Assembly (NCBI RefSeq): GCF_001194135.2
Contig: NC_068981.1
Coordinates: 5,432,562-5,496,561 of the forward strand
Source: Octopus bimaculoides
Lineage: Eukaryota
Direction: 5' to 3'
DNA: 64,000 nt
Shown: in pieces, positions 16,301 to 63,539 of the stretch
Numbering within the stretch: the first letter of the stretch is position 1
Layout: each line of letters starts with the position of its first letter
Position numbers and translations under genes: made by a program
The notes under the pieces: generated by a model
Databases searched by the model: none
Told to the model about the DNA's origin: nothing
The model's input: the letters and a program-made list of their open reading frames with translations, nothing else

Positions 16301-19300
16301 GGTACCTCTGGACCTCTTTGGTTACTATTCTACAATGACATTTCCAAAGACCATCAGTGTTGGAGACACTTTTTTTTTTCAAAGTTCCTATTCTGCTTTT
16401 CATATATCAACTTTTATATGTTGAACTATTTAAAACATTTAAAAATCTGTAGCTGTTTCCTACAGTAAATACATCCAAATCAAAATTTTTTCCTGGATCC
16501 TTAAAATGTGGACCCCTGGGACTAAATGGAAAATGGTTGAGAACCATTGGTCTACTTTATTTTTTCCAGTCCACCACCACCTCCCTCTCCTTCCTCTTGG
16601 CAGTGTCTTTGCTGGTTTGGCTAGCAATAGCTCCAAAGAACATTAACCTGCTCAGTTACACCAGCAATGGTGACAACTTTGTTCAGTTGGGCCCATGTGC
16701 CTGGCTTTTGTTTAGGCAACAGGAGAGAACTTCCACTTCAGAGACAAACCAACACAAAACAATGGGTATAATGTGGAATACAGCTTAAGAGGAAGCTAGA
16801 GGAACTGGATAAATCTGCCAGACATACTGGAATTCTGTCTGTGTTCCCCCCCCCCTCTCATCCTGGGCAAAAAATTAAAGATGCATTCAGAATTTGCAGA
16901 TTCTTTGAATTAGATATGTCTTCTAAATCTCCTTTACTGGTCTTAGATGGAGTGAAATGATTAATCATAGTATTAAAGCAAATCTTTTTTCTTTTTTCCC
17001 TTCCATACATTATATTTAAAACACATATTTGTTATGTTTTGGATGACATTTGTTTCAAACTTAATCCACTTTTCTGTTGAAATACATAGTTTTTGTTTTG
17101 ATTTATTTTGAAAATAAGAATTTATAGACAAAATAATCCTTTTCTTAGCATATTCCTGTTATGTTCACTCTTTGTTTTAGTTAAGTTTGAAAAGAATGAA
17201 TTTAGTGAGATAAGTGTATCCTCATTAACCCAGTGTTAGGAACAATGAAGTTTGGATGGAAGGTTTTAGTTTAGATCACTTCAAAAGAAACCTCTTGTAT
17301 CATAGACTGGGCTTACTCAAACTGCTTGATATCAAAAGGGTCACTTTAGGTTTCTTTTGAAACTTGAAAAAATGTTTGACATTTGAAATGGTTTTGTTTC
17401 CTGTTTTTCTTTGGTCTTCGTATTGTTTTCTAAAAACCTGATGACTGATTTTTCTATAGGCAATCGTCTAAGTGACCAGAGGTCAGATGCCCAAATTTTT
17501 TGATGTTTATATTATGTACTCATTACTTGATGCATTTTATACTGGATTTTAACAGCAAAAACTGGGGTTGTGACTTAGTTACGGAGCAGGACTGAACTCC
17601 TTAGCATTTCAACCTACCATGCCCGGATTGAGTATTCGGTTTAATGTTCAAACTGGTCTAACTTATAACATCATTCTAAAAAAATTGTCACATCCTCAAA
17701 ATCTTGGAGCTACAAGATAATGCCCAATGCGAATCGATGTGAATAAATAAGCATTACATTTGATGGAGAAATCTGAATGCTAAAGAGTTTGATCAAAGAA
17801 AGGAAAAGCTTTGTATGCAAGATTAACACTAAATTTCAAATGCAACTCGTAAAAATCAATGCAACATTTATATATTGTAAAATATTGTATGAATTTGTGT
17901 AATTAAGGTCCCAAGACAAAGATGGCTTTATTTCATGCTATCTGTTTTATTTATTTTATTTTATGTTTTTGTATATTTTCAGAACCTACTGTTAGGTCAG
18001 ATTTGGTTGAGCAAGTCCCTCATGTTGCCATGTACTGTCAACAAAAAAGTAACTTATTTGCCAATGCTGTTCCTACTTATATTCTGCCTTTGATTGTCAA
18101 ATACCTCAGTGACAGTGACAACCAGGTACATAGTTACACACATTCTACCCACCTCTTCTTTTCACCCAGGTACCTAAAATTAAATTAGTTGTTGTCCTTT
18201 TTTTTTTCTGTTTTGGAATGTCTAGGTAAGAAAGACCAGTCATGCTGCCCTTGTGGTACTTCTTGAACAAGAACTTGTAGAAAGAGGTAATTATTTCTTT
18301 GTCAGTTTTAAACTTGCTTCTGATAGGGTCCTTGGTTCAATCTTCGGCTATTTCATATTTGCAGCAAATAATGTCATCTCCTGGTGTTTCACTCTTTGTC
18401 CTTCCTTCATCCATTAATATTTTTCTCTCCACTTCACCATCTCCCTCACCTCATACACTTCCCTCCCCCACCTATCCACTCTTGTAGCCCACCCAGTTAC
18501 ATGTCATCTGTCTCTTTACTGTATCAATATTCTGCTGCCCTGCATTCCGTCAATCTTTACTCTTGACACTTGGCCTCAGAGGTCATCCACCATTCATCTC
18601 CCTTTCAGGGCCACCTATCTTTCCAATCACATTCTTCCCCCATTCTCTCTCCACCTACCCACACTACGGATTCTTCTATGCCCCTTGTACCTTGAAGGTC
18701 TGCCCAGACACCTCGTCACTGTTTTTGTCTTTGGAGCTCCACCCAATCACTTAGCCTCCCTTCCAAAATGCAAATACTGGTGTAGCAGCTCCTCTACAGC
18801 AATAAACCACTGCTCTGGCCCCTTATTTCATGCTTTAACTCCTAATTCTCCCTCTTCAAGGTTCATAGTCTTGCAACCTCACTGGTGTTGGTGGCACAAG
18901 AGAAGCACCCAGTACGCTCTGTAGCATGTTTGGCATTAGAGAGGCACCCAACTGTAGAAACCATGTCGGCAGACAATGCAGCATGATAGGCAGTCCTTGG
19001 GACCATCAGATTCTCTCAAACCGTTGACCACATGCCGGCATAAAAAAAATAAATGGACATTAAATATGGAATTCACTAAATTGGAAAGCTGATGGGATGA
19101 AATGCCTTTTCTATATTATTATTGAGGTTTCAATCCAATGTCGAAGCTTCCATGATAGCCATTGGTATGAATTGGTTTCAAGGATTTGCTGCCATTCTTT
19201 ACAGAGAATGGCGGACTTTGTTCATTTCTCCAGTCGGCAGTAGGATGTAAATTAATTCTGTGAGACTCATTAAAAATATTTTAAATTGTTGAATCTTCTT

Positions 19301-21873
19301 AAATATTTTGGGTGATCGTGTGTCCTTTAGCATGTTAATGTTTTATTTCAGTCGATGTTGAAGACCAGGTGGTTCAAGTATTGTTGGACCTTGCTTGTCC
19401 AACAAGTCCAGATGAATTTCGCACAGAAGCTGCTGCCGTAAGTGGACACTTTCAACTACCTCTTACTTTACGCAACATGCACTAACTTACTACTCCCTCC
19501 CTGTTCTAGTTTTGCCCTTTTTTCAGTTTCCAGCCTCGTCCCTTTTTTATTTTTTCCACTATAACAATTGTGTTTGGCTTGAAAGACACGGGTAGTGAGA
19601 TGTTATTTTATAAACTTCTTACTACCCTGTCTTTCGAGCGGATCACTTTACATTCTTGCTGCTGATGAAATATGAATTGAAACTGCAAGTAAAGCGAAAC
19701 TAGTTTGTCTAATTATGCCTAATTATGTAAAAAAAAAGAGAAGGAAAAAAGAAATTTTAGTTGAATAACTACAGTTACATTCCGCCCGTCCCTCTCCGTT
19801 ATTCCTTTCAGTGCAACAGAGCTTGATGTAGAAACAGGTTACAAAGGCATCAATGCTGGATGTCATAGTAAATCTATGGGGCCTATCACAGCCAGCTTTG
19901 ATGAGCCTTGTCTCCTGCCAGTCATCACTGCTAGTTTGGTGTGCCCCTTACCCCCCACTTGGATATTTGCAGATTTTGAGTTTTCAGAATAGAAGAAAAG
20001 AATCTTTGTTTGTTTGTTTTTGTTTGTCTGCCATGTCTGTTACTGACCAAGTGGTTGTGAATGTGCTGCTAAATTGGACTTTCATATCACAGCCTGCTTG
20101 GATCAGTAACATACTTGGTGCTTCAACGCCTTGGAATGGACAACAGCCATTTTTTAACACCTTTCTAACATTGCCTATTCTCTCCTAACCTTGTTACAGC
20201 TCATCAAAGGACTGTGATATATAGATATTTGAACGTCTCACAGCCAGCTTTGATGAGCTGGCTGTAGGTTGCTTCCCTGCTCCGCTAGCTTTACACCTTT
20301 TTTTTTTTTTTTTTTTTNNNNNNNNNNGCAATAGCTTTCTTCAGCTTTTTTTTTTTTTTGTTTTTTTTTAAACCAATATCCTTAGTGTTGTGACTGTGTT
20401 GTATCTCATCAAAGAGCTGGGATATGCTAACAAAATGACGTATCACAGCTAGCTTTGATGAGCTAGGGCACTGTTGAAAGCATCACAAATCCACATGTTG
20501 CTTGAGATGTTCCTTTTTTTTTTGTTTTTTTATATACCTATTAGTTGTGTAAGGTGTTTTTGTATTTAATTTACGTGACTTTTTTTTTTTTCGTATTTTT
20601 GTGTGAGGTGTTTGGCAAGAATAAATGGTTAGATTCATTGATTTTGTTTCCCTCCTATTGGCATTTCTGAATTGGACATAGTTCTCTGTGTGTATCTATT
20701 GGCCATGTTGCATCTCATCAAATAACTGGGATATGCGGTTATAATGACGTATCACAGCTAGCTTTGATGAGCTTCAACTTGGTTGTTCTCAGCAACCTGG
20801 TTCACCCTCCTGGATATTTTCTCTCTCTCTCTCCTTTTTCCCGACTTTATAATCCCTTTCCATGTTTTTCTTGATGCTTTTGTATCTGGCACCCTGAATT
20901 CTAGTGGCTTAGTTGTAACTCATCAAATAACTGGGATATGCTGCTATTAGGACATATCACAGCTAGCTTTGATGAGCTGGGACTTGGTTTATTTTGGCAC
21001 ACTTCTCACCATTTTAGTTGATGGGGGAAAATTTAATGTTCTTGCTGGATTATAAGATGTTGTTTATAATTAATAAATGTTGTTGACTGTGTTTTGATGT
21101 TCCGACTCTATTGTAACTCATTAAAGAGCTGGGATATGCTGTCTTTCTGACATATCACAGCTAGCTTTGATGAGCTACACTTGGGTTATTTCACCTCCAA
21201 TTTACTTGTTTACTTTGTCTTAGCGATTTAATATTCCTCATTTTTCTCATTTAGAAGTCATTTAGTTTCATAGACCAATGTATTTTCAGAAATATTCTTC
21301 AAATAAAAAAAATTAAATGTTGGGGAACTGAAATTATTTTAAAAAAAATTGTTTTAGTTATTGTTTGACGTAATGTTTTCAATTGTCCTATGTTCTCTTG
21401 GTATAATCCCAGGACCACTTAAATCATTGATCATCCCCAAAAGCGGTGCCTTCTGTAGCTGTAGGATTCCCTTTTTCAGACAATGACTTGTTGGAGATAA
21501 CTCAGCCAGATAGCCCCCTCCGTTCTTGTGTTGTCGGGGGCTCTGCTCTCTGCTTTAAGTCACCAAAGTGGTGGTGATGTGTTCTCACTAAACCATATCA
21601 CAGCCAGCTTTGATGAGCTCAAACATGAGACCATACAGCGATGGCTGGGATCTCCTTTCATCAAAGTGGCTGTCATATGCTTTCCAATCCTTCATATCAC
21701 AGCCTGCTTTGATGAGAGGAAGCCCTTCACTGCAAATTCAGATGCCACCATTGTTGTCACTAGCAGCAGCAGCAGCAGCGGCAACAAAACACTTGCTCTC
21801 CCCATTTTTTGTTCCTTTTTATGTATAAAATGTTTTGGAATTACCAGTTTTGGCTTTAAAGTACCAATGTTTT

Positions 21874-21905
<32 letters not shown>

Positions 21906-24900
21906 CTCCAACCAGTTTCACATTAATATAAGAGCAGTGGATCTCAACCAGGCTCCATTTACAATTTCACTAAAATTTATCTGCAATAAATTGCTTATGC
22001 TTCTTTTTTTTTTTTAATTCTAAATATTCAATAAAAAATATTTTAAAAAATTGAATGAAAGTCTACTCGAAATCGAAATCAAAGAAGTAAAAAGAAAATG
22101 GTTGAGGACTGCTGATGTAGAGGTTTGCATTAGGTGCCAGCAGATTTACATAGTTTGTCTTGTTGGAAATGATGTCGATCTATTTATTAAAAAAAAAAAT
22201 TTTTTTTTCCACTTAGATCACTTTAACCCTTTTGTTACCATATTTCTATTGAAATNNNNNNNNNNNNNNNNNNNNNNNNNNNNNNNNNNNNNNNNNNNNN
22301 NNNNNNNNNNNNNNNNNNNNNNNNNNNNNNNNNNNNNNNNNNNNNNNNNNNNNNNNNNNNNNNNNNNNNNNNNNNNNNNNNNNNNNNNNNNNNNNNNNNN
22401 NNNNNNNNNNNNNNNNNNNNNNNNNNNNNNNNNNNNNNNNNNNNNNNNNNNNNNNNNNNNNNNNNNNNNNNNNNNNNNNNNNNNNNNNNNNNNNNNNNNN
22501 NNNNNNNNNNNNNNNNNNNNNNNNNNNNNNNNNNNNNNNNNNNNNNNNNNNNNNNNNNNNNNNNNNNNNNNNNNNNNNNNNNNNNNNNNNNTTTTTTTTT
22601 TTTTTTTTTTTTTTTTTCTTTTTGAGATGAGAAATTTGTATTGGTTTGTATCAAATTTCTCTTGGGGACAGAAAATTTTAGCTTTCATCTGTCAAATACT
22701 CTCCTGAAATAGTATATGGTGTTGCCTTGGTGGGAAATAACTTCTGTAGATGGGTAGCAGTTTAGCTTTAACTGGAATATTTGTTGAAGGGAATAAGTTG
22801 AAATTGGTGCATCTTCAAGAACATGTGTAAAATTAGCAATACTGATTGCAAAATATTCTTTGGTACTTTAAAGCAGTAAATACCATCCTCATGCAGTGGA
22901 AATGTGTTTGTAAAATGATTAGTTTGGTTCTAAACCATTCTTTGAGTTGTGTAATGGATGTTTTCTTCCCAAAACTGTTAAAAACTATTTCCATGGTTAA
23001 AATGAGTTTTTACCATCGGTTGTCATCGTTGATGCTTCGCTCTTAAAATTTCCAATAAAATTTCAACGAGCCGTACTCCTTCCTCAGAAGGGCTACTTCT
23101 TCACCCATTGTACTCCGATTTTGTTTCTGTATTTTCTTTTCTATTGTTTGCTCATTATAAAAGATGATAGCAATGATCATCTGTGGATTAAAGCCTATTT
23201 CAGTGCAGTTGATAATCCATTTTCTGCCCAAACACCATGTTAGAATTGGCGGCAAAACTATTTTCCAGTTAGCAAGCTGTTGATTTTTGTGAGTTTCTTC
23301 TGATTTTCTTTGTTTTATGTTTGACAAGGTTTAGTAGTAGTAGCAGCAGTAGTAGTTGTGGTGGAATAGCATAAAGTATTAGTTTCATATCTAAATATTA
23401 AAGGGCAATGAAGTTCCATACTAAATTATGTGATCTAGATACGCATAACAAATATAAATTTTTTTTTATCAGTGAAGTACAATAATCTAGTATTTTTTTT
23501 TTTTTAACTTAAAACCATTTAAAAGAATTTAATTAACTTAGTTTCCTTCTGATGAATTGTTACTAATTAATCTTAATGATCTCGACCAGAATAATAGTAA
23601 ACCCATTCTGGTCTCTGGATTATAAGAAATATAAGTATTACAGCAGAGAATACTGTCTTGTCAAAGTTTTTTTGTTATGTTTCTGTGTTGTTCAAGAATT
23701 TTTCTAAATGCTCACATGTATTTCTGGATTTCTTTCAACAGTTGATGTGCAAAATGGCGCCTTTGCTAGGAAGAGAAATGACTGAACGTTTGTTTCTTGC
23801 CCGTTTTACTCAAATGTGTTCAGACCCTCTATTCCATGTGAGAAGGGTAAGCTATGGGCTCGTCAAACAGCAATATTTTTATTTCCCTTTCCTCCAATAG
23901 ATCGGAAGACAATTTTATATGTAAATGGTTTTCTAGAAATTCACCTAAACTTCAAGGTACATTTGATACCAGATAGCTGTTGTAAATAGCATTGAATTGG
24001 TTCTCAGCAAGGGTCAGTATAAGACTTAGGCATTAAAATTTACCTGTAATATATTGAGGATGCTTTTATAATACGCAAATATTTTTTTCTACAACTGAGT
24101 GAAATCATAGTTGTAGCTGGTGGCACGTAAAAAGCACTGTTCGAGTGTTGGGTCTCATGGAGGCAGTAACGGGTGAACAAGACCTTTGGTGATATACCAT
24201 GCTTGTTTGGACCTGTTGAGCCAAGCGAGACCAGCTGATGCCAGTGTCAGGTCATTGGCACCCGTGCTTGTAGAAAAACACCCGCTACACTCTCGGTGTG
24301 GTTGGTGTTAGGAAGGGCATCCAGGTGTAAAAACCTTGTCGAATTAAATTGGGACCTGGCGCAGTCTCTCTGACATAGCAGTTTTCAATCAAACCGTCCA
24401 ACCCATGCCAGCATGGAAAGTGATTATCTTGACAGTTTCTAATAATAATTATAAAATATAGGATTTTTGTTTTAAGTGTGAACTGGCTATGAAGTCTAGT
24501 AGGGTTAAATAGGAATTGGAGGGATCGCTGGTATAAAGGAATGATTTGGTGACAGACAAAATTAACTGAGATATACTGACTTTCAGTTTATTTTCAGAAT
24601 AAGGATTTGGTAGTGTTGTTAAGCTACTGTTTGGAATGTAAATTTAGTTGAAATCTTAATGGAGAGCTGCTAGGCCTTTAAACTGGTCATATTTGACCCA
24701 AACACTACCATTATTGTATGGTGAAACTGGCTTTATCTGGTCTCTCACACCTAATCTAATGTGTCATTCTACAAATAATCACATGGGAATTTAAGCACTA
24801 CAAGGTAATGAATGATTAATTGAACACCATGTGAATAAATTAGCATTACTTGACATGAAGTAATTTAAGTGTCAAAGGGTTAAAATAGGACATTTGTATC

Positions 24901-30031: not shown

Positions 30032-33000
30032 CCATACATTGCCATTTGTTCTATAGCTTTGAACTTGACCAAACTAAAATTCTGGTTAAAAAATATGATC
30101 TACAGCTGTAATGGTAGCATACGGATGGCTTTCAAATGATGTATTCTACCTTATTCGTTTTTAACTTGCCTCACTTCCTCCTCTGTGTACAATGAACACA
30201 AAGCTTTTGCATTCCTTTTCATGGGTTTGCCTCTCCTATGTTACTGCAAACACACTGGACATTAAAAATCTCACCGTCCATTTATAAATGGATGGTTGGT
30301 AATGGGACTTAATATGTAATTTATATTAAGCCCAGGAAGTGGGGATTGGTATTAATCCTTTCTTACCTTTTACACCGGTGCCTGTCTCTTTATTTATACT
30401 ATTACTTTTCAACACCTGGCAAAAAGCCACCACTACCCAAACTCAATTGAGGGAGCTTTTCCTTTTTGCCTTTGTCCAGACACAATCTCTTTTCCTTTAT
30501 GTCAAGTTATCATCATCTGGAATGTTTTTAGTAAGGCATGCAAAAAAAGAAGAAAGATGCATCAGTTTTAAGTCTTTTAAAGAAAATCTCTGGTTGGATC
30601 TGGTTTCTTATGAAAGATGTTGAAGACCTTTTCAGTTTCCTTTTGTGTTACTAAAATAAAATAGTTTTTGTTTTTAATTTGTTAGGTTTATTGAAAATAG
30701 AAATGTCTGATTTGCCTCTGGCATCTGTTGTTACCATTTCGTTGTATTTTTTAAATCTTTCATATTTAGTCACCACTTTTGAATATGACTGATATATTTA
30801 TCTCTTTTCTTATATTCTGTTGAAATGGTGTTTCAATTTGAATGTAAAATAAATTAGTAAGTTAACTTTGCTGCTATTAAGCTGGTGTGTGGATTATAAA
30901 ACAGCCTGAGATTTTCAGGGAAAAACTTTATGAAGTTAAAACAGTTTCTTTTGAGAACCAAGTATGGTCTCACGCGAGTTAATATGAAGAAATTAACTTT
31001 TTAGCATTTAGACTGGCCATATCCAGCCCAAATATTCAGTTTTATGTTCAAAGTAGCTATATCTGGCCTCTTGCACCATTGAACAATGTCATTGTAAATA
31101 TAAGCAATCACATCATCAAAATTGCAAAGCTATGCGACAATGCATGATTCAAAGCAATGTGAATCATCATCATCATCATCATCGTTTAACGTCCGCTTTC
31201 CATGCTAGCATGGGTTGGACGATTTGACTGAGGACTGGTGAAACCGGATGGCAACACCAGGCTCCAGTCTGATTTGGCAGAGTTTCTACAGCTGGATGCC
31301 CTTCCTAACGCCAACCACTCAGAGAGTGTAGAATGAACATTATATTTGACAAGGAAGTGCTCTGAATGGTTAATGTGGCTGTTTTTAGCTGTTTAGATGA
31401 GTTTCCTTTGAGGAGTTTTGTCTCAAAAGAAACCTTTTAATTACAGGTAAGTACAGGTGAAAATCACTGCACTGCAAAATTGTTTTAACCATCACCATAT
31501 TAGTTTAACTGTGATGAGTGATTCTAGCAAAAGACTTCAGGAGTTGGACATATTGGATAGCCATGACAGATACATACACATGGATTGCATAGAAAAGTTT
31601 GTAAAAATAAAATGGAATTCAGAGCCAATGTTTAAGATATTTGCATATGGATTTAACCATATATGCACTGTTTTTCTTCCATCTTTCCATCTGACAAACA
31701 GGTTTATGTAGTTTAATAGTTTTCCAGATCCAAATTTTGGCTTAGGAACCTAGCAAACCACTTATAAACTCTCCTCCCAGATGTGGCACCATCTCCATAA
31801 ACATGTTTTTTGCTCTTTGTACAGCATTCTGTCCTTTCTGAAAATAAAGAGTATCAAATGACGAAAATGTTTGTCATTTTCCTCCATTTCCTTTTTCTTC
31901 TTTTTTTTTTTTTTTTTTTCTTTTTTTTTTTTTGGAACATTCAAAACACATCTCTTAATGTATCCTACAGATCAGTTATTCTCGACCATTTTAATAATAT
32001 CCAAGTCGGATCCAAAACCTTTTTTTTTTTTAAATTTTAAAGAGGGTCACCAGAATGAATCATGATTCAATTAAAGAAATAGTTTTATTTATAGAGGGAA
32101 GATTGTTGAGGGCAGCCAGCACGATGTTTGAGAACCACTGGTGTAGATACACTTTGAAATGTTATCTTTCAGAATCTGTATATATGCTAAAAGTCAACTG
32201 TGAAACAAAGTCACTTGTTCAAATACCCCCATTTAAAAGAAAAAAAAAGTCACAAGCTTTTGTTCTAACTCCGTAATTTTTTTACAATAACAAGGTTTTT
32301 TTTTAAACATAACATCCTCTGTTGGAAAAATCCCAAATGTAATTAACATAAACCAATTGTGATGCACTAATCATTAAAGAATTTCTCGATCATCTATTTG
32401 TTAATTTAAATTTGAAAATGGTTTATAAAATCAGTTATGGTATATATCTTTGGATAGGTGTGGCCGTTTGGTAAGAAGTTTATTTCTAAACCACATGGTT
32501 CTGGGTTGTCCCAATGTACGAAACCTTGGGCAGGTGTCTTCTACAGTTTGGGCCAACCAGAACCTTCAGTGGATTTGATAGACAAAAATTGAAAGCTGTG
32601 TGTGTGTACATAGACACAGAGCAGACTTCTTTCACACACACACAGAATATCAGTGTTTATCCCCTGCCTCACGTAAAGACCAGTGTTTGGGAGAGGATAC
32701 TAATGCAGTAAATACAGTGATACCTTACAGTATGAGTTTAATTCATTCCACAATCAAGCTCTTCTTAAAATTTACTCGTTTTACAAATCAATTTTCCCCC
32801 ATTTCAATTAACTAAAATATAATTCGTTCCAGCCCCCCAAAAAACCACTCAATTTTTAAATTTTTATGGGTTTTAAAACAGAATAGGTGTGCTTACAAGT
32901 AAAATGACAATTGTGAAAAAGAGTATGCGAAAGAAATATGTAAGCTGGTTTATTTAACTGAATTACCTTAAAGATGTGACGTGTGCTCGTATTGTGGATT

Positions 33001-44916: not shown

Positions 44917-47900
44917 TCTATATAAATAATAGTTTTGAAATTGGCTGCATGAACTACATGCTTTATATAGCTTGTTCTCTTGAAATTCACTGGGTGAACC
45001 ACACATTTTTCATGTTTCTGTTTTATTTTCTCTAGATATATTGAGAAAATGTCATAGATCCATTAACCCTGTTAAGTTATCTGGTTTTTCAGGTCTTGGC
45101 ATTTGCAATGATAAAAGAAATGATCAAATACTTATTACAAATGTTCTTAAGGAATGTTGTTTGATGTTGCCAAATGTTCTTAATGGAGTGGATGTGTTTA
45201 ATCAGAAGTTTGCTTACTTAACGCATGGTTGGTGATTCAGTTCCACTGCACAGCACTTTGGGCAAATATCTTCCATTATAGCATTGGGCCTTGACTGGAT
45301 TTAGTTAACAGAAAGCTTTGACTTGGATTTGGTTGACAAGAACACAAGGAGCTTGTCATGTGTCTGTGTTTTCCTCATTTTTCTCTGGCTTGGTGTCATT
45401 GGCTTGCAGTCTACCATGAAAGCAGATCTTGGCTTCGTAGCAAATAGCACTGTCTGTCTGTCTGTCTGCCTCCAGTTCCCTGCATAAAACATGTCCAACC
45501 TGTTAGTTGCGAGGTTGTTATCTCACTTGGAAACAAGTAGGGGTTGGGGACAAATTGTCTTGACATACTCTTGGCTCCTGCAAACATGGCAAAGCAGACA
45601 TTAGACCAGTGGTTCCCAACCCTTTTATTTAAACGAGTTTTCTCATAGATGCATCTTTGATATGCTCATCCTTGTGTGTGTGTGGATTTTGAATTTAGTT
45701 GATAGACCTCCAGTACTACCTTTACGGGCCACAGGTTCAGAACCACTGCATTAGAACAACAACATCCCTCATTAAAATAGACTAGAAACATTTTTTTTTA
45801 GTATTCCTTTTTTAATTTTTGGTTTCTAATAAAATTTAATTTTCTTGATAAAATTTTGAAGTATTGTTTTAAGATCGTTTAAGTAATTCATCTCAGAAAT
45901 TTCAGCTTAATTTTCTCGGTTAAATATTGGTTTTAATTTACTTTTTATGGTTGTTCAAATATAAAATGACTGTTTTGTGTGGTTGTGAGTTTGGTCCCAA
46001 CAGCATGGCACCTTGAAGCAATTCCTTTTCTGGGTGGGATGTGGTCGACAGAAATGTTGTGTGGTGTTTATGTGGCTGTAATTTAGAATGCAAAGGTGGA
46101 TGAATACCAGGAATTTTCCCCTGCATGTCAGGGGTTTGTTTGACCCTTGTGGTACTTGTCTAACCCATTGAAAATACACTGCCTTTGTTTTGATTAATTT
46201 TGAAAATGAAAAATTTGAGGTATAGAAGGACAGATATGGGTATGTTACTGTTGATACGTGAATACTCGAGATGAAAAAGAAGGCAGGGTTAGGGTTAGGG
46301 AATAAGAGAGAGAGAGAGAGAGAGTAATAGTGGAGAAGATGTGTTGTGACCTGCTCTTGAGGGATATGGGGGATGGTGAGAATAAGTGAGTTTTGACTAA
46401 GGGCATCCAGCTGTAGAAACTCTGCCAGATCAGATTGGAGTCTGGTGTAGCCATCTGGTTTGCCAGTCCTCAGTCAAATCGTCCAACCCAGGCTAGCATG
46501 GAAAGCGGATGTTAAATGATGATGATGATGATGATGACGACTGGGTGGGTGAGCAGAATAGAGATGATTGTTGAGCAAAATACAGGAATAGCTTGAGGTT
46601 TTTTTGCCTTGCAAGTTACTTGGTGACCCTGTCAGTGCCTGTACCATCTATAATCCACCTGCTCCACTCTGTAAAGTGGTTGGCATTAGGAAGGACATCT
46701 AGGCATAGAAACCATGCAAAAACAATGGAACATTGTGCAATTCCAGGCTTTGCCAGCTCTTGTCAAGCCATCCAACCCATGCCAGCATGGAAGACAGATG
46801 TTAAATGAATCTAATGAAATAGTATAATTAACCCTTTTAGCATTCACGTTATTCTGTCAAGTGTAATGCTTATTTATTCACACTGTCTTTGAATTAATCC
46901 TGCATTGTCTTATACCCTCGAAGGTTTCAATAACAGGAAAGTTTAATTTTTGGAATAGCATTGTAAGGTAGGTGTGAGAAGCCAGATCTGGGTAGTTTTA
47001 ACATAAAAGAAGTAGAACATTGAGGATGGATAGGGCTGGTTTAAATGCTAAAGGGTTAAGCTGGTATTTGGGACAAACTGACTTGGAATTGTACTGGAAT
47101 GTTTCCCGATCGCTTTAAAACAACCAGGAGCAGTCGTGGGTGGGGGACGGTAAGGAAAGTTTAGTTATCTACATTACAATCGTCTGTAAAAATGTCCTCT
47201 TTTACTTGTTTCAGTCATTTGACTGCGGCCATGCTGGAGCACTGTCTTTAGTTAGCAAATCGAACCCAGGACTTATTCTTTGTAAGCCNNNNNNNNNNCT
47301 GTCTTTAGTTAGCAAATCGAACCCAGGACTTATTCTTTGTAAGCCTAGTACTTATTCTATTGGTCTCTTTTGCTGAACTGCTAAGTCATGGGGATGTAAA
47401 CACACCAGCATCGGTTGTCAAGCTGGGGGGACAAACACAGACACACAAACCTATATATATATATGTGCACATATATATACGATGGGCTTCTTTCAGTTTC
47501 CGTTTACCAAATCCACTCACATAGCTTTGGTCGGCACGAGGCTATAGTAGAAGACACTTGCCCAAGGTGCCACGCAGTGGGACTGNNNNNNNNNNGCTTT
47601 GGTCGGCACGAGGCTATAGTAGAAGACACTTGCCCAAGGTGCCACGCAGTGGGACTGAACCCGGAACCATGTGGTTGGTAAGCAAGCTACTTACCACACA
47701 GTCACGCCTGCACCTGTTAATTTATGTTCTGAATACCTGCTTAATAGTGACAGTGCTAATTATTTTTTCATTATTTTCAAAATTAATTGCGACAGAGGTC
47801 GTGTATATCAAATAAATCTGGTGACAGCTGGAAACCAATGAATGTGTGTTTGTGTGGACTGGGTGAGTAGGGCAATCCCTGCAGTCTATAATAAAGTTGG

Positions 47901-50900: not shown

Positions 50901-53900
50901 TAATGTATTAAAAATTTTCTTATTTCCTAAGCATGCATTAAACATCTGAATTGTCTGCTGTGAAACAATTTGCAATGTTTTGTCATGGCCCTTCTTGTAT
51001 AGATTTCCTGTTGAAATTTTAGTAAATTTCTATATTTTACAATAAATTGTTCTGACATAACCAGTAAGATTAAGGTTGGTAGCAACAAGTATTTGTCTTT
51101 TAAAAAGAGGAATTTCTTTCATACCATTATTAGATGGGACTACATGTGATGGAAAGTGTTCCTGAAGGTCGTGCCATAATATAAAATTCATTTTACCATT
51201 GGTTTTCATGTTCGAAAGTAGATTTTTCCGAAAAATCAAAGAAAGAGAAAAAACTAGCAACACAACCACTTTTATGCATGAAAATAAAAATTTCTAACGA
51301 CAGGAATGGCTATGTGGTAAGAAGCTTGCTTCCCAACTACATGGTTCTGGGTTCAGTCCCACTGTGTGGTACCTTGGGCAAGTGTCTTCTACTATAGTCA
51401 CAAACCAACCAAGGCCTTGTGAATAGATTTGATAGATGGAAACTGAAAGAAGCCCATCATGTGTGTTTGTCTCTCACTGCCATTTAACAACCGGTATTGG
51501 TGAGTTTGTATCCCTGAACACCAACCGATTGGCAAAGGAAACCAATAGAATAAGATTTAGGCTTGAAGCAATTCATTCAAGTAAGCTTCTAGATGGTGCC
51601 CCAGCATGGCCACACTGAAACAAGTGAACAACGAAAGCTACCCAGTATCACCTGTGTACATAAAACATATTTGAAGAGAGATACTTTGGGGAATTAACTA
51701 GAACTGTAATATAATGGGGGACGTTGGGCTGCCTCACGAGGCAAAGTGGCACGTGAAAAGCACCTTTTGAGTGTTTGGCCTCACGGAGGCAACATCAAAT
51801 GGCTGACACCTTGGCATTATGTCCCGCTTGAGAAGACCCTCAAGCCAAGTAAAATCAGTCATGGCATATACTGGTGTCATGCAAATGGCACCAATGCTGT
51901 TGGCACATAAAAAGCACCTGGTTGGCGTTAGGAAGGGCATCCAGCCGTACAAAACCATGCTAAATCAGACTGGAGTCTAGTGCAGCCTTCCAGCCTTGCC
52001 AGCCCTGGTCAAACCGTCCAACCCATGCCAGCATGGACAACGGTCGTCAAATGATGATGTTCTTACCACAAAAGCTGTTGACTCCTGTGATGAGGAACAC
52101 TATTTTCTATCTTATACTTCATCATCAACATCTACTTAAGTGAAGAACTTCGCCAAAATCTCTTGCTGTTAATGGCAGATCATTGTCCTAATTTAGCCTC
52201 TGTTTTCCATCCTAGCATGGGTTGGATAGTTAGACTGGAACTGGTAAGCTGGAGAGCTGCACCAGACTCCAGTCTGTTTCGGCTTGGTTTCTATGGTGTG
52301 GATGTCTTTAATGTGTCATAAATTTGTAAAGATTTGGAAGGCTTTTCATGGATTTGCGTGTCCTCCTTTGGTGTAAGAACCATTCACATTGTAAACATCT
52401 TGTACTTTTTGCTATCTTCATAATTAGGGTTATCAGCAAAAACTCGTAGACCTACCCCTGTGTGTGGCAATCATTTACTAAACTGTGAAAGAACATGTTA
52501 TTATATGTGGTTTTGTAGTGAGACAAGTGGAGATGTTTGGGTAAGATTGTCAGTCAGCCTGAGACGTAGGTAAGATGAATTAGTGGTTAGCTGTGGAAAC
52601 AATTGCTTGATCTATTCCATTGACAAACATTAACCCTATTAATATTGCTGCCTTCATTTTAATTAACTTTGAAAGTATGGAAGAATTTAAAATAATTTTG
52701 GTGGAAGATTTTGAGAATTTAAAAACTAGAAATTTGTATCCTAATACGAAGAGGCAGTCTCATGTGAGTTCGAATCAAAAGAGTTAATGGAGAGATAACT
52801 TTTGTAGTTATATATATTGGAAGTCTGTCTGGACTTAGGGAAATCACTGGTAAATGAATGTTAGAAGCAGATGTCGTAGCTGATGCCAGTGGCATGTAAA
52901 AAAAATTCTTGGAGTGGTTGGTGTTAGGAAAGGCATCCTGTTGTAGAAATTTTGCCAAATCAAACTGGAACCTGGTGCAGCCCCCTGACTTACCAGTTTT
53001 CAACCAAACCGTCCAACCCATGCCAGCATGGAGAGCAGACATTAAATGATGATGATATGTGATTTAGCATTTGATGCTTGTTTCTTTAACAATATTTAAT
53101 TTGGTTTTCAGTGGAAGGTTCGACGAACTCTGGCATTCTCCATCCATAAACTTGCTGTGATTTTAGGAGAAGATATTACCCATAAAGACCTGGTTCCTGT
53201 CTTTGATGGTTTCCTTAAGGATCTAGATGAAGTTCGGATTGGAGTTTTAAAGCATCTGATGGAATTTCTTAAGGTGAGCCCTAGTATAAACTACTATGCT
53301 TGGTTGACAAACCTTTAAACTTCAATTTTAACTATTTTCATACCTTTTATTTCTGTTGAAATAAATTGCCTGTCTTTCAGATAGCTATGAGAAATAGCTG
53401 TGGCTGTGCAGTTAAGATTGCTTCCCAACCATGTGGTTTTGGGTTCAGTCCTACTGCACGGCACAATGGGCCAACCAAGCCCTATGAGTGGATTTGGTCA
53501 ATGGAAAGTAAAAGAATCCCTTTGTGTGTGTGTCTGTATTTTTATCTAGGCATAGGTCTACAAACCTCTGTTCTTGACACTTGTGATGTTGACTGTCCCA
53601 TGGCCCCCTCTAAAGCCACTCTGTCTTCTGTGTTCTGAATGTGGTGGTTCAGGAGGATTCTTGCAAGAGAAATTCCTGGATGGTTGTCAAAAGAATTACC
53701 CGTTTCCTTTTCTTGTCAGACACCGTATGCCTCTTCCTCTTGCATGTAATGTTATTGGTTATTGTCAACGACGACAAACGGAACAAATAATTTTAGACAT
53801 CCTGCGATGGTTGTAAAGAAACCTCACCGTCATCCAAGTGATGTTCTTTGTTTCCTGCCCTTCAGGAAAAGCAGATCTGGCTGCGAGGNNNNNNNNNNAT

Positions 53901-59900: not shown

Positions 59901-62900
59901 NNNNNNNNNNNNNNNNNNNNNNNNNNNNNNNNNNNNNNNNNNNNNNNNNNNNNNNNNNNNNNNNNNNNNNNNNNNNNNNNNNNNNNNNNNNNNNNNNNNN
60001 NNNNNNNNNNNNNNNNNNNNNNNNNNNNNNNNNNNNNNNNNNNNNNNNNNNNNNNNNNNNNNNNNNNNNNNNNNNNNNNNNTTACCTGTAATTAGTCATT
60101 TTGAGACAAAAATTATGCAATAAAATTAAGAACCTTTTCTTTGTGTTCCAAAAAATCACATTAATATGTTGAAAAGTTTTTTAATGAAACCAGTCTAAAT
60201 TTGTGATTATTTTAGAATGTAATTGAAACTCATAAGGTGTGTGTTCTACTTAGAAATTTAGTAACAAAAGGGTTGAGTAAAATATCTTTGCCCTCATTAA
60301 ACTTTTGTTTAGAATATAATTTCACATGAAAGTTTGTAGGTCAATTAAAGAACTTAGGCTAGAAGCACTGCGCAGTGACTTGCACAAATATAAACTTGCA
60401 TTATTTACATTTGATGGATATTTGTCCTCATCTTGTTTGTTGTTAATGTTTCGGTTGATACATCCTCCAGCCTTCATCAGGTGTCCTGGGGAAATTTCGA
60501 ACCTGGGTTCTCATTCCCGAGGTATTTTTTGATGTTATTATTTTTATTATTCAGCGGAGTGGTTGGCGTTAGGAAGGGCATCCAGCTGTAGAAACTCTGC
60601 CAGATCAGATTGGAGCCTGGTGCAGCCTTCTGGTTTGCCAGTCCTCAGTCAAATCGTCCAACCCATGCCAGCATGGAAAGTGGACGTTAAACGATGATGA
60701 TGATGATGATGTCACTGCCTAAAATCAAACTTGGACTCTTGGGGTTAGTAGTCCACACTCTTAGCCAGTACACCATATGCCTGTGGGCAATTGTGGAGTG
60801 AATTTTAGGACTTATAAATCTAATATTTTCCTATCCTTCCTTAATACTGGTTCCCATTTGCTACTCATATCTGCACTCAGTCTGCTTAGGAGATTGTTGT
60901 GTCCTAGTATTGTCCTACCATATGTGTTGCTTCTTTTAGACACCTGATGAAGGCTGGGGGGGGGGTGTATCAGCCGAAACATTGTGTTAACAGCAAACAA
61001 GATGAGAACAAATATCTGTCAATTGTAAATAATTCCTCATCTCTTAAATATAGAATTGAAATATTAACTTATCAACTCATATACACTCAACACATATCTG
61101 AATCTGTAAGAAAAGCATTGTCTGCGTTTTGTGAGGGAGGCAAATTCTTGCAGCCCACAAGTAGTTTCAAATATGTATTGTAGAAATAAGGGCATTTTCA
61201 GGTTGGGAAATGAAGTATTTGGTGCTGGAATCTTGGTGGACTCTTTATAATATATATTTCCAGAACTCTACAGCTCAACCAGATTAAAATTTTTGAAATG
61301 CATGAAGAAACTCTTATCCTTTTCTTGGATGCAGCTGAAAATAAATAGGTTGGACAGTTTGACCAGGACTGGCAAGGCTGGAAGGTTGCACCAGTGTGAT
61401 TTAGCATGGTTTCTTTGGCTGGATGCCATAGAACACAACGCCAGTCGCTCCAAGAGTGAAATGGGTGCTTTTATGTGCCACCAGCACAGTGTCTATATAC
61501 AAACTAACAACCTGAGTTGTGTCTGCGTATATCTGAGACTCCGTGTGAAAGAAAGAAATAAGTCAACAACAGTGCAAATGTAGGCTCTCTGTTGCTGAGG
61601 TTTTGTGAAGTTCTTTGTTTTGTCCATTATTTCACTCCTCTCACCTGAGTTATCTTTCCCTACCTTTAAACACAGGAAAAGATTTTTCAACAGCTGAGAA
61701 ACCGCCCATTCTCCTGTGGTTTTTAAGAGTGCTGCCAATACAAACTCTGCTGGCTCACTTAATTTCTGGTTTTATTCTCGGATCCTCTCCAATTAAGTGT
61801 TGAGCCACCACCATATGATTTTAATTAGCCCCTACTGCTTGTGTTTCTTGGGAGTAGACATTTGTTATTATATCTCTAATCAGGCATTTTCTTGTTCATA
61901 CTGATACGACCAGACATTCACTGTTCTTATCATCCATGCTGGCATGGTTGGATAGTCTGACAAAGATGCATTGAGCTTCAAATGTCTGCTCTGGCATTGA
62001 CTCTTCAGCTGTCTTAGATTGCCAAGCATCACATTTTGTGATCTGGTGGGGCCCACATTGTGTAAGACCTTCTCTGATTTGGGAAATTTTGTTATACTTA
62101 CCAAATCTCCATTCACACAACCAGGCAGTGCCTGATGGGCACATACTAAATGCTTGCAGTCAAGTGAAATGCTCACACCCATTGTTAGACCAAATCACCA
62201 GACAGTAACCACCCAATTGGTGGTTTAAGTGAAGAGCACTATGGTCTTCAATTTATTTGTGGAACACACCATGGTGATGGCAGCAACCCCCACATGTAGC
62301 ACAACACACTTCTGGCCACTGCCCAAAGAAAACCACAGCAATATTTTATTGGATTAATTTCTTTTCTTTTTAACATGAAAGTGTCTTCAACAATGAAAAA
62401 AAAGCAGTGACTTGCAGGGCCAAGAAAAAGCGAAGCCCCGCAACTGAATAGGGTCGTTGTGGGTGAGGTGACTTTATGCCAAGTATTGAGGGACTCAAAA
62501 TACGATGGGAAGATAGTGTCTTGCTGTAGAGGTAACACATGGCTATCTTGCATTATATAGGGGTGGGTACAAAGAAGCTAAAATCACGGTGACAAGGTAT
62601 TGGCACATACTTTCCAAGATATCAGAAAGGATATGAACTGAATGTTGAGTGGGGTTGGCTTCTCTATAAATCCCCTTTGCATCTTAACTCAACTGTATCC
62701 AGTCAATTGTTTCTTTCTAGATTCTATAAATCTATTTACATTCTATACTTAATCTCTGCAATATTGCATCTCTTGTTGTAAAGGGGACTAGGGGCTTATT
62801 GTCTTCCTTCACTGTTGGATAAACCTTGCGTGTTTCACTGAAGGTCTCTTGTAAGTAAATAATCTCTCCAAGAAGCTGTTTAATGTTGATCGTTTCTATG

Positions 62901-63095: not shown

Positions 63096-63144
63096 GTAAG
63101 GTTCTTTATTCACCTATTCATTACTTTTCCATTGAAATTGTCTC

Positions 63145-63147
<3 letters not shown>

Positions 63148-63209
<62 letters not shown>

Positions 63210-63254
63210 ATATATATATATATGTGTATATATATATATATGTGTGTGTGTGTA
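63148..63254. repeat. (TA)n/(TG)n compound microsatellite
   Basis: Direct inspection. Confidence 0.98.
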
Positions 63255-63539
63255 TCATTGTTGTCGATTAATTCCTGCTTTCCATGCTGGCATGGGTTGG
63301 ACCTTTTGATTGAGGACTGGTAAGCCAGAAGGCTGCACCAGGTTCAATCTGATCTGGCAAAGTTTCTACAGCTCCAAGAGTGTATTGGGTGCTTTTACGT
63401 GCCACTGGCACGAGGGCCAGTCAGGCGGTTCTGGCAACGACCACGCTCGAAAGGCATTTTTCACGTGCCGGTAAGGTGACACTGGCAACAATCATGCTTG
63501 GATGTGCTTTTAGCGTGCCACTTAACAAGCAAAGTTTAT

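Follow-up and report, generated by a model that had tools for sequence, protein, structure and literature searches.

Ten hairpins in an intron of PPP4R1

The window analysed here (the whole 64-kb stretch of octopus DNA) carries ten sense-strand microRNA hairpins between adjacent coding exons of PPP4R1. Using tblastn with PPP4R1 homologues, the exon upstream of the hairpins (ending …VDVEDQVVQVLLDLACPTSPDEFRTEAAA) was placed at 19352..19437 on the + strand, with a GTAAGT donor from 19438, and the downstream exon (LMCKMAPLLGREMTERLFLARFTQMCSDPLFHVRR) was placed by a homologue match at 23742..23846 (+), with a GTAAGC donor from 23847. The best-matching homologue of these exons is a gastropod protein (P0201), cephalopod entries being absent from the PPP4R1 search results, and the exons that flank the hairpins are consecutive in the coordinates of the homologue P0125 (about residues 167-193 and 194-231). 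The intron between them (19438..23741, +) has clean GT…AG boundaries (donor GT at 19438-19439, acceptor AG at 23740-23741) and a length of 4304 nt, including two assembly gaps. The possibility that the hairpins are mirtrons was rejected, as they are internal to this 4.3-kb intron and the nearest one begins about 135-140 nt past the donor.

When scored with Rfam, the first hairpin passed the mir-71 gathering threshold (RF00832; 66.5 bits versus 50) with a full-length match (1-73, + strand), and seven of the nine others passed that for mir-2 (RF00047; 46.2-58.3 bits versus 45.5). The two sub-threshold mir-2 hairpins (20040-20111 and 19843-19910; 45.4 and 39.6 bits, respectively) have conserved counterparts in other animals. 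E-values ranged from 6e-12 to 9e-6 across the eight hairpins above threshold; the two below it had 9e-7 and 2.5e-5. For every hairpin, the + strand outscored the - strand; antisense miRNAs were rejected as candidates because the - strand Rfam scores were lower throughout and below threshold.

A 20-nt arm pattern, TCACAGCYNGCTTKGATSAG, occurs nine times between 19886 and 21716, always on the + strand, and is absent from the rest of the 64 kb; a count of nine was not attained in any of 100 shuffles (shuffle mean 0.12). All nine mir-2 hairpins lie on the + strand within 2.15 kb downstream of mir-71, and eight of their 3p arms begin with UAUCACAG (seed AUCACAG), hairpin 4 being the exception. All ten candidates fold as hairpins, with z-scores from -10.8 (mir-71) to about -2 (21549-21629). 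An earlier note on this DNA had proposed ten sense-strand hairpins forming a polycistronic array of mir-71 and the mir-2 family inside PPP4R1, with mature arms starting at 19580, 19884, 20085, 20236/8, 20441, 20750, 20955, 21153, 21596, and 21695. Rfam, the arm pattern, and the folds confirm the hairpins, all on the + strand; the arm starts are exact, and the family identity, sense polycistronic layout, and host gene are correct as judged by Rfam, homologues, and the exon map. The K-box seed named in that note can be read directly from the sequence, AUCACAG being the reverse complement of CUGUGAU.

The spacers between the hairpins are U-rich, as had been noted (41% T versus 33.5% T for the window), and the cluster region, up to about 22200, is free of SINEs and matches nothing elsewhere in the window. 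The edge of an interspersed repeat of ∼150 bp, with 17 further copies elsewhere, follows from about 22200. Near the start of the window, a retroelement ORF at 407-745 has protein matches that are at most 74% identical. A scan of both strands of the host intron revealed no further convincing hairpins, and a search for tRNA-derived elements found none. Beyond the hairpins, the intron folds showed only pairing of adjacent copies with each other and, at 21484-21563, a weak GC-rich structure (-25 kcal/mol).

Based on these results, the locus is almost certainly the conserved protostome mir-71/mir-2 polycistronic microRNA cluster (RF00832 and RF00047; MirGeneDB MIR-71 and MIR-2), in which mir-71 comes first and is followed within a few kb by several same-strand mir-2 copies that have the 3p seed AUCACAG and vary in number by tandem duplication (Marco et al. 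2012, PMC3384581). According to the same study, the linkage of mir-2 to mir-71 is ancestral, and mir-2 multiplied by tandem duplication (PMC3384581). The octopus locus does not differ from this cluster in kind.

The same PPP4R1 intron in other animals

We compared the locus with 63 other mir-71 loci fetched from other animals, many of which are incomplete at their ends. Of these 63 loci, 39 show flanking PPP4R1 exons in the orientation of the cluster. A homologue of the upstream exon (…RTEA[AV]A) was found in 21 other loci and one of the downstream exon (LMxKMAPL…) in 20, with both present in nine, and their strand and order were always the same. In Ranatra chinensis and many other animal contigs, mir-71 and then same-strand mir-2 copies are bracketed by homologues of both PPP4R1 exons. 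The presence of both flanking exons in nine other loci indicates that the host gene and intron position are ancient.

In C. elegans, mir-71 is located in an intron of ppfr-1 (PMC3410857), so the same miRNA family has an orthologous host (PP4 regulatory subunit 1), a likeness that holds at the level of the gene. Together with the 39 loci found here, this bears out the linkage to PPP4R1, which the earlier note had described as not new. A literature search for a published statement that PPP4R1 hosts the whole mir-71/mir-2 cluster returned none, only the case of C. elegans mir-71 and ppfr-1. The cluster sits in its usual PPP4R1 intron and, with nine mir-2 copies against the eight already listed for oyster, is an ordinary, previously known feature.

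The C. elegans data raise the possibility that the cluster depends for its transcription chiefly on a promoter of its own, in or upstream of the intron, instead of being processed from PPP4R1 pre-mRNA. There, reporter expression is driven by 2.4 kb of sequence lying upstream of mir-71, and losing ppfr-1 does not have the effects of losing mir-71 (PMC3410857); a cited study found independent promoters to be retained by one third or more of the intronic miRNAs of C. elegans. We consider this possible for the octopus cluster but unlikely, given that PPP4R1 orientation and intron position are conserved, always on the same strand, in all 39 loci that show a PPP4R1 exon, as co-transcription would favour, and that mir-71 lies only about 135-140 nt past the 5' splice site, which leaves little room for a promoter inside the intron.

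Properties of the individual hairpins

The mir-71 hairpin (19574..19643, +; 66.5 bits, E 6e-12) has a minimum free energy of -45.4 kcal/mol (z -10.8), and its 5p arm, UGAAAGACACGGGUAGUGAGAUG, starts at 19580. This arm is identical to UGAAAGACAUGGGUAGUGAGAUG (seed GAAAGAC) at 22 of 23 bases. The sole mismatch, a C for U at position 10, falls in an unpaired bulge; U is found there in 63/63 other loci.

Hairpin 2, the first of the mir-2 hairpins (19843..19910, +; 39.6 bits, sub-threshold against 45.5, E 2.5e-5; z -3.1), has the 3p arm UAUCACAGCCAGCUUUGAUGAGC from 19884 and an unusual 5p arm that is conserved in the first mir-2 of two other loci (L007 and L039), with 3 compensatory pairs. Hairpin 3 is of the miR-2d type (20040..20111, +; 45.4 bits versus 45.5, E 9e-7; z -5.4), and its 3p arm, UAUCACAGCCUGCUUGGAUCAGU from 20085, is identical to cgi-miR-2d and lgi-miR-2d (PMC4941716) and to arms in two of the other loci (L062 and L009). 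This hairpin is conserved in 5 sequences and shows 4 compensatory pairs.

Hairpin 4 (20197..20262, +; 48.2 bits) has an altered base at arm position 2. Its arm, UCUCACAG, gives the seed CUCACAG, or CACAGCC if shifted by 2 nt, and can be read as the 3p variant UCUCACAGCCAGCUUUGAUGAGC from 20236 or as UCACAGCC… from 20238. The A-to-C change at position 2 is absent from every other mir-2 arm among the matches listed, and in this respect the locus differs from the protostome cluster as described. The hairpin fold has an energy of -29.9 kcal/mol; for 20190-20269 with flanks added, the minimum-energy fold is an alternative structure, and the hairpin emerges in an 80-nt window.

Hairpins 5-8 are all of the miR-2b-1 type. 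Hairpin 5 (20402..20467, +; 50.6 bits; z -5.6) has the 3p arm UAUCACAGCUAGCUUUGAUGAGCU from 20441 and holds UCAUCAAAG in its 5p arm. The 3p arms of hairpin 6 (20711..20776, +; 49.3 bits; z -3.3), which is a member of tandem family D1, hairpin 7 (20916..20981, +; 48.4 bits; z -3.07), and hairpin 8 (21114..21179, +; 46.2 bits; z -5.1) start at 20750, 20955, and 21153, respectively. Hairpins 6 and 7 are 84% identical over 90 nt. Across all four, the 23-nt 3p arm is 100% identical and the remainder is 65-80% identical. Hairpin 9 (21556..21622, +; 58.3 bits) carries the canonical arm UAUCACAGCCAGCUUUGAUGAGC from 21596 and has a weak fold when flanks are included (z -1.95), and hairpin 10 (21654..21721, +; 55.9 bits; -38.9 kcal/mol, z -6.6) has the 3p arm UAUCACAGCCUGCUUUGAUGAGA from 21695.

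The conservation pattern of the array, with invariant 3p arms and divergent loops, is miRNA-like. In addition, 7 of the 10 hairpins have a CNNC motif beginning 16-20 nt downstream of where cropping is assumed to occur, compared with an 18% background (binomial P 4e-4, for a distance window chosen post hoc and paralogues that are non-independent).

The stems of hairpins 2, 6, 7, and 9 are the weakest (z -2 to -3.3), and this bears on whether function is confined to a subset of the nine mir-2 hairpins, with one or more of these four being decaying, poorly cropped duplicates. We regard such decay as improbable, somewhat more so than a separate promoter. The folds of the four (z -1.95 for hairpin 9, -3.07 for 7, -3.09 for 2, and -3.3 for 6) are consistent with it, as are the Rfam score of hairpin 2, which is sub-threshold by 6 bits, the lack of a CNNC at the expected distance in hairpins 7 and 10, and the ability of hairpins 9 and 10 to cross-pair. 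However, all nine 3p arms are intact, the arm of hairpins 5-8 being identical at 23/23 positions despite 65-80% identity elsewhere; the orthologues of hairpin 2 are conserved with compensatory changes; and hairpin 9 has the highest Rfam score of the nine (58.3 bits).

Copy number of mir-2

In the 63 other mir-71 loci, many of them incomplete at their ends, the number of mir-2 copies is 1-5 under permissive criteria and never above 4 at the Rfam gathering threshold, compared with 9 and 7, respectively, in the octopus window. The first hairpin filter used for these counts missed hairpin 7 and gave one false match at +5500, and the counts were rechecked with a second filter and Rfam. Nine copies are more than at any of these loci. 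The earlier suggestion that they represent a lineage-specific expansion in dosage, relevant to the growth of the coleoid miRNA repertoire, is not supported.

The reason lies in published data from the oyster (Crassostrea gigas), in which Mir-71 and eight expressed, MirGeneDB-based Mir-2 paralogues are reported (Cgi-Mir-2-o28 to -o35; PMC7488030, Additional file 1). The paralogue number is close to that of the octopus (8 versus 9), for eight genes whose joint placement in the PPP4R1 intron is not stated there. By the earlier note, finding the same nine-copy arrangement in non-cephalopod molluscs would refute an expansion, and the oyster, with eight, essentially provides it. The arms also correspond (cgi-miR-2a/2b/2d; PMC7488030, PMC4941716): hairpin 3 has an arm equal to cgi-miR-2d, hairpins 5-8 have a 3' arm equal to cgi-miR-2b-1, and the canonical arm likewise matches miR-2a (PMC4941716). 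The difference is that the miR-2b-1 arm is present four times in the octopus window. From the eight oyster paralogues and the identical arms in oyster and limpet, we conclude that large Mir-2 arrays are at least mollusc-wide and not a coleoid novelty. Furthermore, the coleoid expansion described by Zolotarov et al. (2022, PMC9699675) concerns novel families and not Mir-2 paralogues.

It is accordingly unlikely that mir-2 dosage expanded specifically in cephalopods or coleoids, to nine copies, in connection with the growth of the coleoid miRNA repertoire. Such an expansion would fit a copy number above that of any of the 63 other loci (no more than 5 under permissive criteria; at Rfam gathering, up to 4 versus 7), the tandem subgroup formed by hairpins 5-8, and the exact arm UAUCACAGCUAGC…, which occurs in 0/63 other loci. 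It is opposed by the oyster paralogues and the identical miR-2b-1 and miR-2d arms, by the incompleteness of many comparison loci, by the novel families that make up the coleoid expansion, and by the spacers of hairpins 5-8, whose lack of detectable similarity shows that the duplications are old.

A narrower proposal is that the four-copy miR-2b-1 sub-array (hairpins 5-8) and the seed-altered hairpin 4 are cephalopod-specific amplifications that give an old cluster new targeting capacity in cephalopods. We hold this to be more doubtful still. If it were true, hairpins 4-8 would supply a higher dose of the 5p product with seed CAUCAAA, the arm given for Ovu-Mir-2-o24 in the published data on octopus, and would add a shifted or novel 3p seed.

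Two assembly gaps interrupt the intron. The first (20318..20327, 10 N) is in the T-rich, non-coding spacer between hairpins 4 and 5, between T-runs, 56 nt past hairpin 4 and 75 nt before hairpin 5, and touches no hairpin. The start-to-start distance from hairpin 4 to hairpin 5 across this gap is 205 bp, the same as from hairpin 6 to hairpin 7, and spacing equal to that of a neighbouring unit suggests that little is missing. The second (22256..22591, 336 N) begins about 535 nt past the last hairpin and may hide further sequence. Because of these gaps, nine mir-2 copies is a minimum. Exact look-ups of two ORFs (19853-20188 and 21528-21926) found no independent contig on record. It is nevertheless very improbable that the copy number has been distorted by assembly errors that merged or doubled tandem units at the two gaps and their T-homopolymer edges. 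Outside the arm, no two of the nine units are alike (53-80% identity), which rules out assembly duplicates among them; the 205-bp spacing at the 10-N gap fits the neighbouring period; and an error would most likely conceal copies.

Predicted products and significance of the locus

Family membership provides the basis for predicting how the cluster would be transcribed, processed, and used in targeting. The primary transcript would be the PPP4R1 intron itself or a transcript starting just upstream. The Microprocessor (Drosha/Pasha) would crop the ten hairpins, and Dicer would then free the mature RNAs, giving miR-71-5p and nine miR-2-type 3p RNAs. Eight of these nine would pair through the seed AUCACAG with K-box (CUGUGAU) sites in 3' UTRs, and hairpin 4 would yield a product whose seed is changed to CUCACAG or whose 5' end is moved by two bases (UCACAGCC…). 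Candidate 5p arms with UCAUCAAA are also present on five hairpins. The array probably arose by old tandem duplications, in which hairpins 4-8 would form a ∼200-310-bp tandem series and hairpins 5-8 would be four copies of the oyster miR-2b-1 type.

MicroRNAs of both families are already annotated in octopus as Ovu-Mir-71, Ovu-Mir-2-o20-v1, -o21, and -o24 (Zolotarov et al. 2022, PMC9699675), with expression in octopus tissues published for Ovu-Mir-71, Ovu-Mir-2-o21, and -o24. Compared by seed sites only, the site GGCTGTGA listed for the Octopus vulgaris Ovu-Mir-2 entries fits UCACAGCC… here, and the listed site TTTGATGA fits the 5p arm UCAUCAAA….

With the octopus Mir-71 and Mir-2 paralogues already annotated, the locus matters little beyond its correct annotation, in which ncRNA genes should be entered for all ten hairpins within the PPP4R1 intron, with nine mir-2 copies as a minimum. 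A large Mir-2 array is common to at least a bivalve and this genome and is not to be counted in the coleoid miRNA expansion. The cluster lies between the same two PPP4R1 exons across dozens of unrelated animal contigs, which makes the locus a clean case of a miRNA cluster stably kept in one intron of one host gene.

Results

An Rfam scan of the whole 64-kb window at curated gathering scores (mir-2 threshold 45.5 bits) returned exactly eight matches, all on the + strand and all within the interval in which the earlier note had described mir-71 followed by nine mir-2 hairpins. These are mir-71 (hairpin 1, 19574-19643, 66.5 bits) and seven mir-2 hairpins (hairpins 4-10 at 20197-20262, 20402-20467, 20711-20776, 20916-20981, 21114-21179, 21556-21622, and 21654-21721, 46.2-58.3 bits). 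A permissive scan of 19000-23000 added mir-2 hairpin 3 (20040-20111, +, 45.4 bits, 0.1 bit under threshold, E 9e-7) and hairpin 2 (19843-19910, +, 39.6 bits, E 2.5e-5), and every hairpin had a weaker reverse-strand than + strand match. When the whole 64 kb was searched with a degenerate 20-nt miR-2 3' arm pattern, nine occurrences were found, all on the + strand at 19886-21716 and none outside that interval; shuffled sequence gave a mean of 0.12, and 0 of 100 shuffles reached nine.

Folding of each region, as the earlier note had proposed, yielded a hairpin for all ten, with -45.4 kcal/mol (z -10.8) for mir-71 and z from -6.6 to about -2 for the mir-2 copies. At 20190-20269 an alternative structure is the minimum-energy fold when flanks are included, and the 80-nt window gives the expected hairpin. 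An 80-nt sliding fold of the entire intron on both strands found no further convincing hairpin, only cross-pairing of hairpins 9 and 10 and, at 21484-21563, a single weak fold rich in GC, so the cluster has ten members. The two Rfam scans and the folds thus bear out the claim of ten hairpins, and the arm coordinates proposed for them proved exact by sequence reading and by the pattern search. Hairpins 9 and 10 are separated by just 31 nt, and base pairing is possible between the 3' arm of the former and the 5' arm of the latter (21599-21678, -31.8 kcal/mol), which could compete with correct cropping.

The two hairpins below threshold were compared with mir-71 loci from other animals. The hairpin 3 3' arm is identical to arms in loci L062 and L009 and has been published as cgi-miR-2d and lgi-miR-2d (PMC4941716); in a five-sequence alignment its stem is kept, its loop is variable, and four pairs show compensatory changes. 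The unusual 5' arm of hairpin 2, GGCAUCAAUGCUGGAUGUCAUAG, is found again in loci L007 and L039, in the mir-2 copy that directly follows mir-71, with three compensatory basal-stem pairs. On these sequence comparisons, we accept hairpins 2 and 3 as conserved mir-2 genes.

When PPP4R1 homologues were mapped to the window by tblastn, their exons lined up on the + strand between ~12.6 kb and 63.1 kb, with the best matches to a gastropod protein. The exon upstream of the cluster ends ...DEFRTEAAA at 19437 (+, donor GTAAGT), and the downstream exon begins LMCKMAPLLG... at 23742 (+, acceptor ...TTTCAACAG); the two follow one another directly in homologue coordinates, which makes the host intron a single one of 4304 nt. 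Within it, 19438-22199 shares no sequence with the rest of the window, in which a ~150-bp interspersed repeat recurs in 17 further copies, and spacer T content is 41% versus 33.5% for the window; the cluster is therefore SINE-free with U-rich spacers, as first described. Simple repeats, (CAG)n and (TC)n, directly follow the cluster at 21762-21780 and 21880-21908, and a long (TA/CA)-type microsatellite lies at 63130-63270, beyond the final PPP4R1 exon mapped here.

The ~150-bp repeat is SINE-like and occurs at 1-420 and in its further matches, in both orientations (positions include 4-256, 24274-24420, 31163-31331, 46399-46535, 52907-53056, 60556-60710, and 63264-63472); one frame reads ...LQSDLAEFLQLDALPNANHS..., and ARAGORN found no tRNA-like part. 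At the start of the window, long open reading frames (407-745, +, and 130-759, -) look retroelement-derived, and the former has up to 74% identity to many proteins on large ENA contigs.

Two assembly gaps lie in the intron. A 10-N gap at 20318-20327, with T runs on either side, falls in the spacer 56 nt past hairpin 4 and 75 nt ahead of hairpin 5, in non-coding intron sequence where reading frame is of no concern. Measured across this gap, hairpins 4 and 5 start 205 bp apart, as do hairpins 6 and 7, which suggests that little sequence is missing; exact look-ups of two cluster ORFs, made for an independent assembly of this region, gave no match. The second gap (336 N, 22256-22591) begins 535 nt past the last hairpin. 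Given these gaps, nine mir-2 copies is a minimum.

The comparison set comprised 63 loci, from PPP4R1 loci found via four homologous proteins and from 59 metagenome contigs with a miR-71 arm. By Rfam, the insect Ranatra chinensis and three eukaryotic contigs carry mir-71 and then mir-2 hairpins on the PPP4R1 strand, and nearly all contigs that extend at least a few hundred bases downstream have 1-5 miR-2-type hairpin arms after mir-71, L034 being the exception. Gathering-level mir-2 matches number four in the best other loci versus seven in the window. With the window exon peptides as tblastn queries, 39 of the 63 loci proved to contain PPP4R1 exons, which in every case share the strand of the miRNAs and follow the expected order: 21 loci have an exon ending ...RTEA[AV]A just 5' of mir-71, 20 have one starting LMxKMAPL... 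just 3' of the last mir-2, and nine have both (L001, L003, L005, L012, L019, L022, L055, L060, and L061). This bracketing, present in many unrelated animal contigs, shows conservation of both the host gene and the precise intron, and with the exon map it upholds the PPP4R1 host named in the earlier note. In other loci mir-71 often begins 80-170 nt from the 5' splice site.

Locus L034 (JAAUXV010334639.1) has a perfect miR-71 arm, no mir-2-type hairpin in ~3.8 kb downstream of it, and no detected PPP4R1 exon; this lineage may have mir-71 alone or relocated. Marine metagenome contig L062 (OREC01005355.1) is probably from a bivalve-like mollusc: its arms, at oriented offsets of +571 to +3058 from mir-71, equal mollusc miR-2d and oyster cgi-miR-2a-2 (...GAUGACA), with at least five mir-2 copies before the contig end, and its upstream exon, 59% identical to the window's, ranks with the closest.

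Among the nine copies, hairpins 4-8 belong to one direct-repeat family, in which 90-nt units recur at intervals of 198-309 bp. The arm UAUCACAGCUAGCUUUGAUGAGCU is common to hairpins 5-8; its 23 nt are 100% conserved while the remainder has drifted (65-80% identity outside the arm versus 53-71% for other pairs), and no similarity is detectable between the spacers of these four hairpins. Such a pattern is expected of miRNA genes under selection that arose by old duplications. In seven of ten hairpins a CNNC motif begins 16-20 nt past the presumed cropping site, versus an 18% background, with the motif window chosen after inspection and the paralogues non-independent; this placement fits Microprocessor substrates.

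The arm of hairpin 4 (20236-20258) reads UCUCACAG, where all other mir-2 arms listed across the compared loci read UAUCACAG. Either the seed is new or the 5' end has moved by 2 nt (UCACAGCC), and a product with the moved 5' end would match the Ovu-Mir-2-o20-v1 target site GGCTGTGA reported in the literature. In miR-71, position 10 of the 5p arm (19580-19602) is C at 19589 and U in 63 of 63 other loci; this base bulges unpaired, lies outside the seed, and may be a lineage marker.

Discussion

The identification of a mir-71/mir-2 cluster is correct and already known: mir-2 was ancestrally clustered with mir-71 and has grown to differing lengths via tandem duplication (Marco et al., PMC3384581). 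Zolotarov et al. (PMC9699675) annotated conserved miRNAs in Octopus vulgaris, O. bimaculoides, Euprymna, and Nautilus, and their supplements give read counts in neural and other tissues for Ovu-Mir-71 and Ovu-Mir-2-o20-v1, -o21, and -o24. The O. vulgaris Mir-2 seed sites fit window arms, GGCTGTGA matching UCACAGCC... and TTTGATGA matching UCAUCAAA... (5' arm). In the literature searched, no published statement of intron-level conservation of mir-71/mir-2 in PPP4R1 was found, and the one documented case of the host association is that of mir-71 within C. elegans ppfr-1 (PMC3410857).

The proposal that nine copies reflect a lineage-specific expansion is not supported. Nine is high relative to the fetched, often truncated loci, but only one above a bivalve: expression of eight MirGeneDB paralogues, Cgi-Mir-2-o28 to -o35, and of Cgi-Mir-71 is reported in oyster (Rosani et al., PMC7488030), which is essentially the outcome that the earlier note had set out as refuting an expansion, although the oyster papers do not place all eight in the PPP4R1 intron. 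Five distinct oyster miR-2 mature sequences (Chen et al., PMC4941716) include the exact arms of hairpin 3 (miR-2d) and hairpins 5-8 (miR-2b-1), and Biomphalaria has at least miR-2a-1, 2a-2, 2b, and 2d. Identity of the window arms to mollusc miR-2d and miR-2b-1, together with the gastropod exon matches, points to a mollusc. The expansion described in coleoids consists of novel families, not Mir-2 paralogues (PMC9699675).

In all, the window carries ten hairpins in sense orientation, belonging to two known miRNA families, within a conserved intron and with miRNA-type conservation. By family membership, they would be transcribed either with PPP4R1, as part of its pre-mRNA, or from a promoter close by. 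An independent promoter is possible, as 2.4 kb of upstream DNA drives a reporter for mir-71 in C. elegans (PMC3410857), but the invariant orientation relative to PPP4R1 argues that co-transcription matters. Whether hosted or independently driven, the transcript would be cropped by Drosha and then diced, with some copies predicted to give 5' arm products as well, and the resulting miR-71-5p and miR-2-3p species would repress mRNAs with K-box-type sites.
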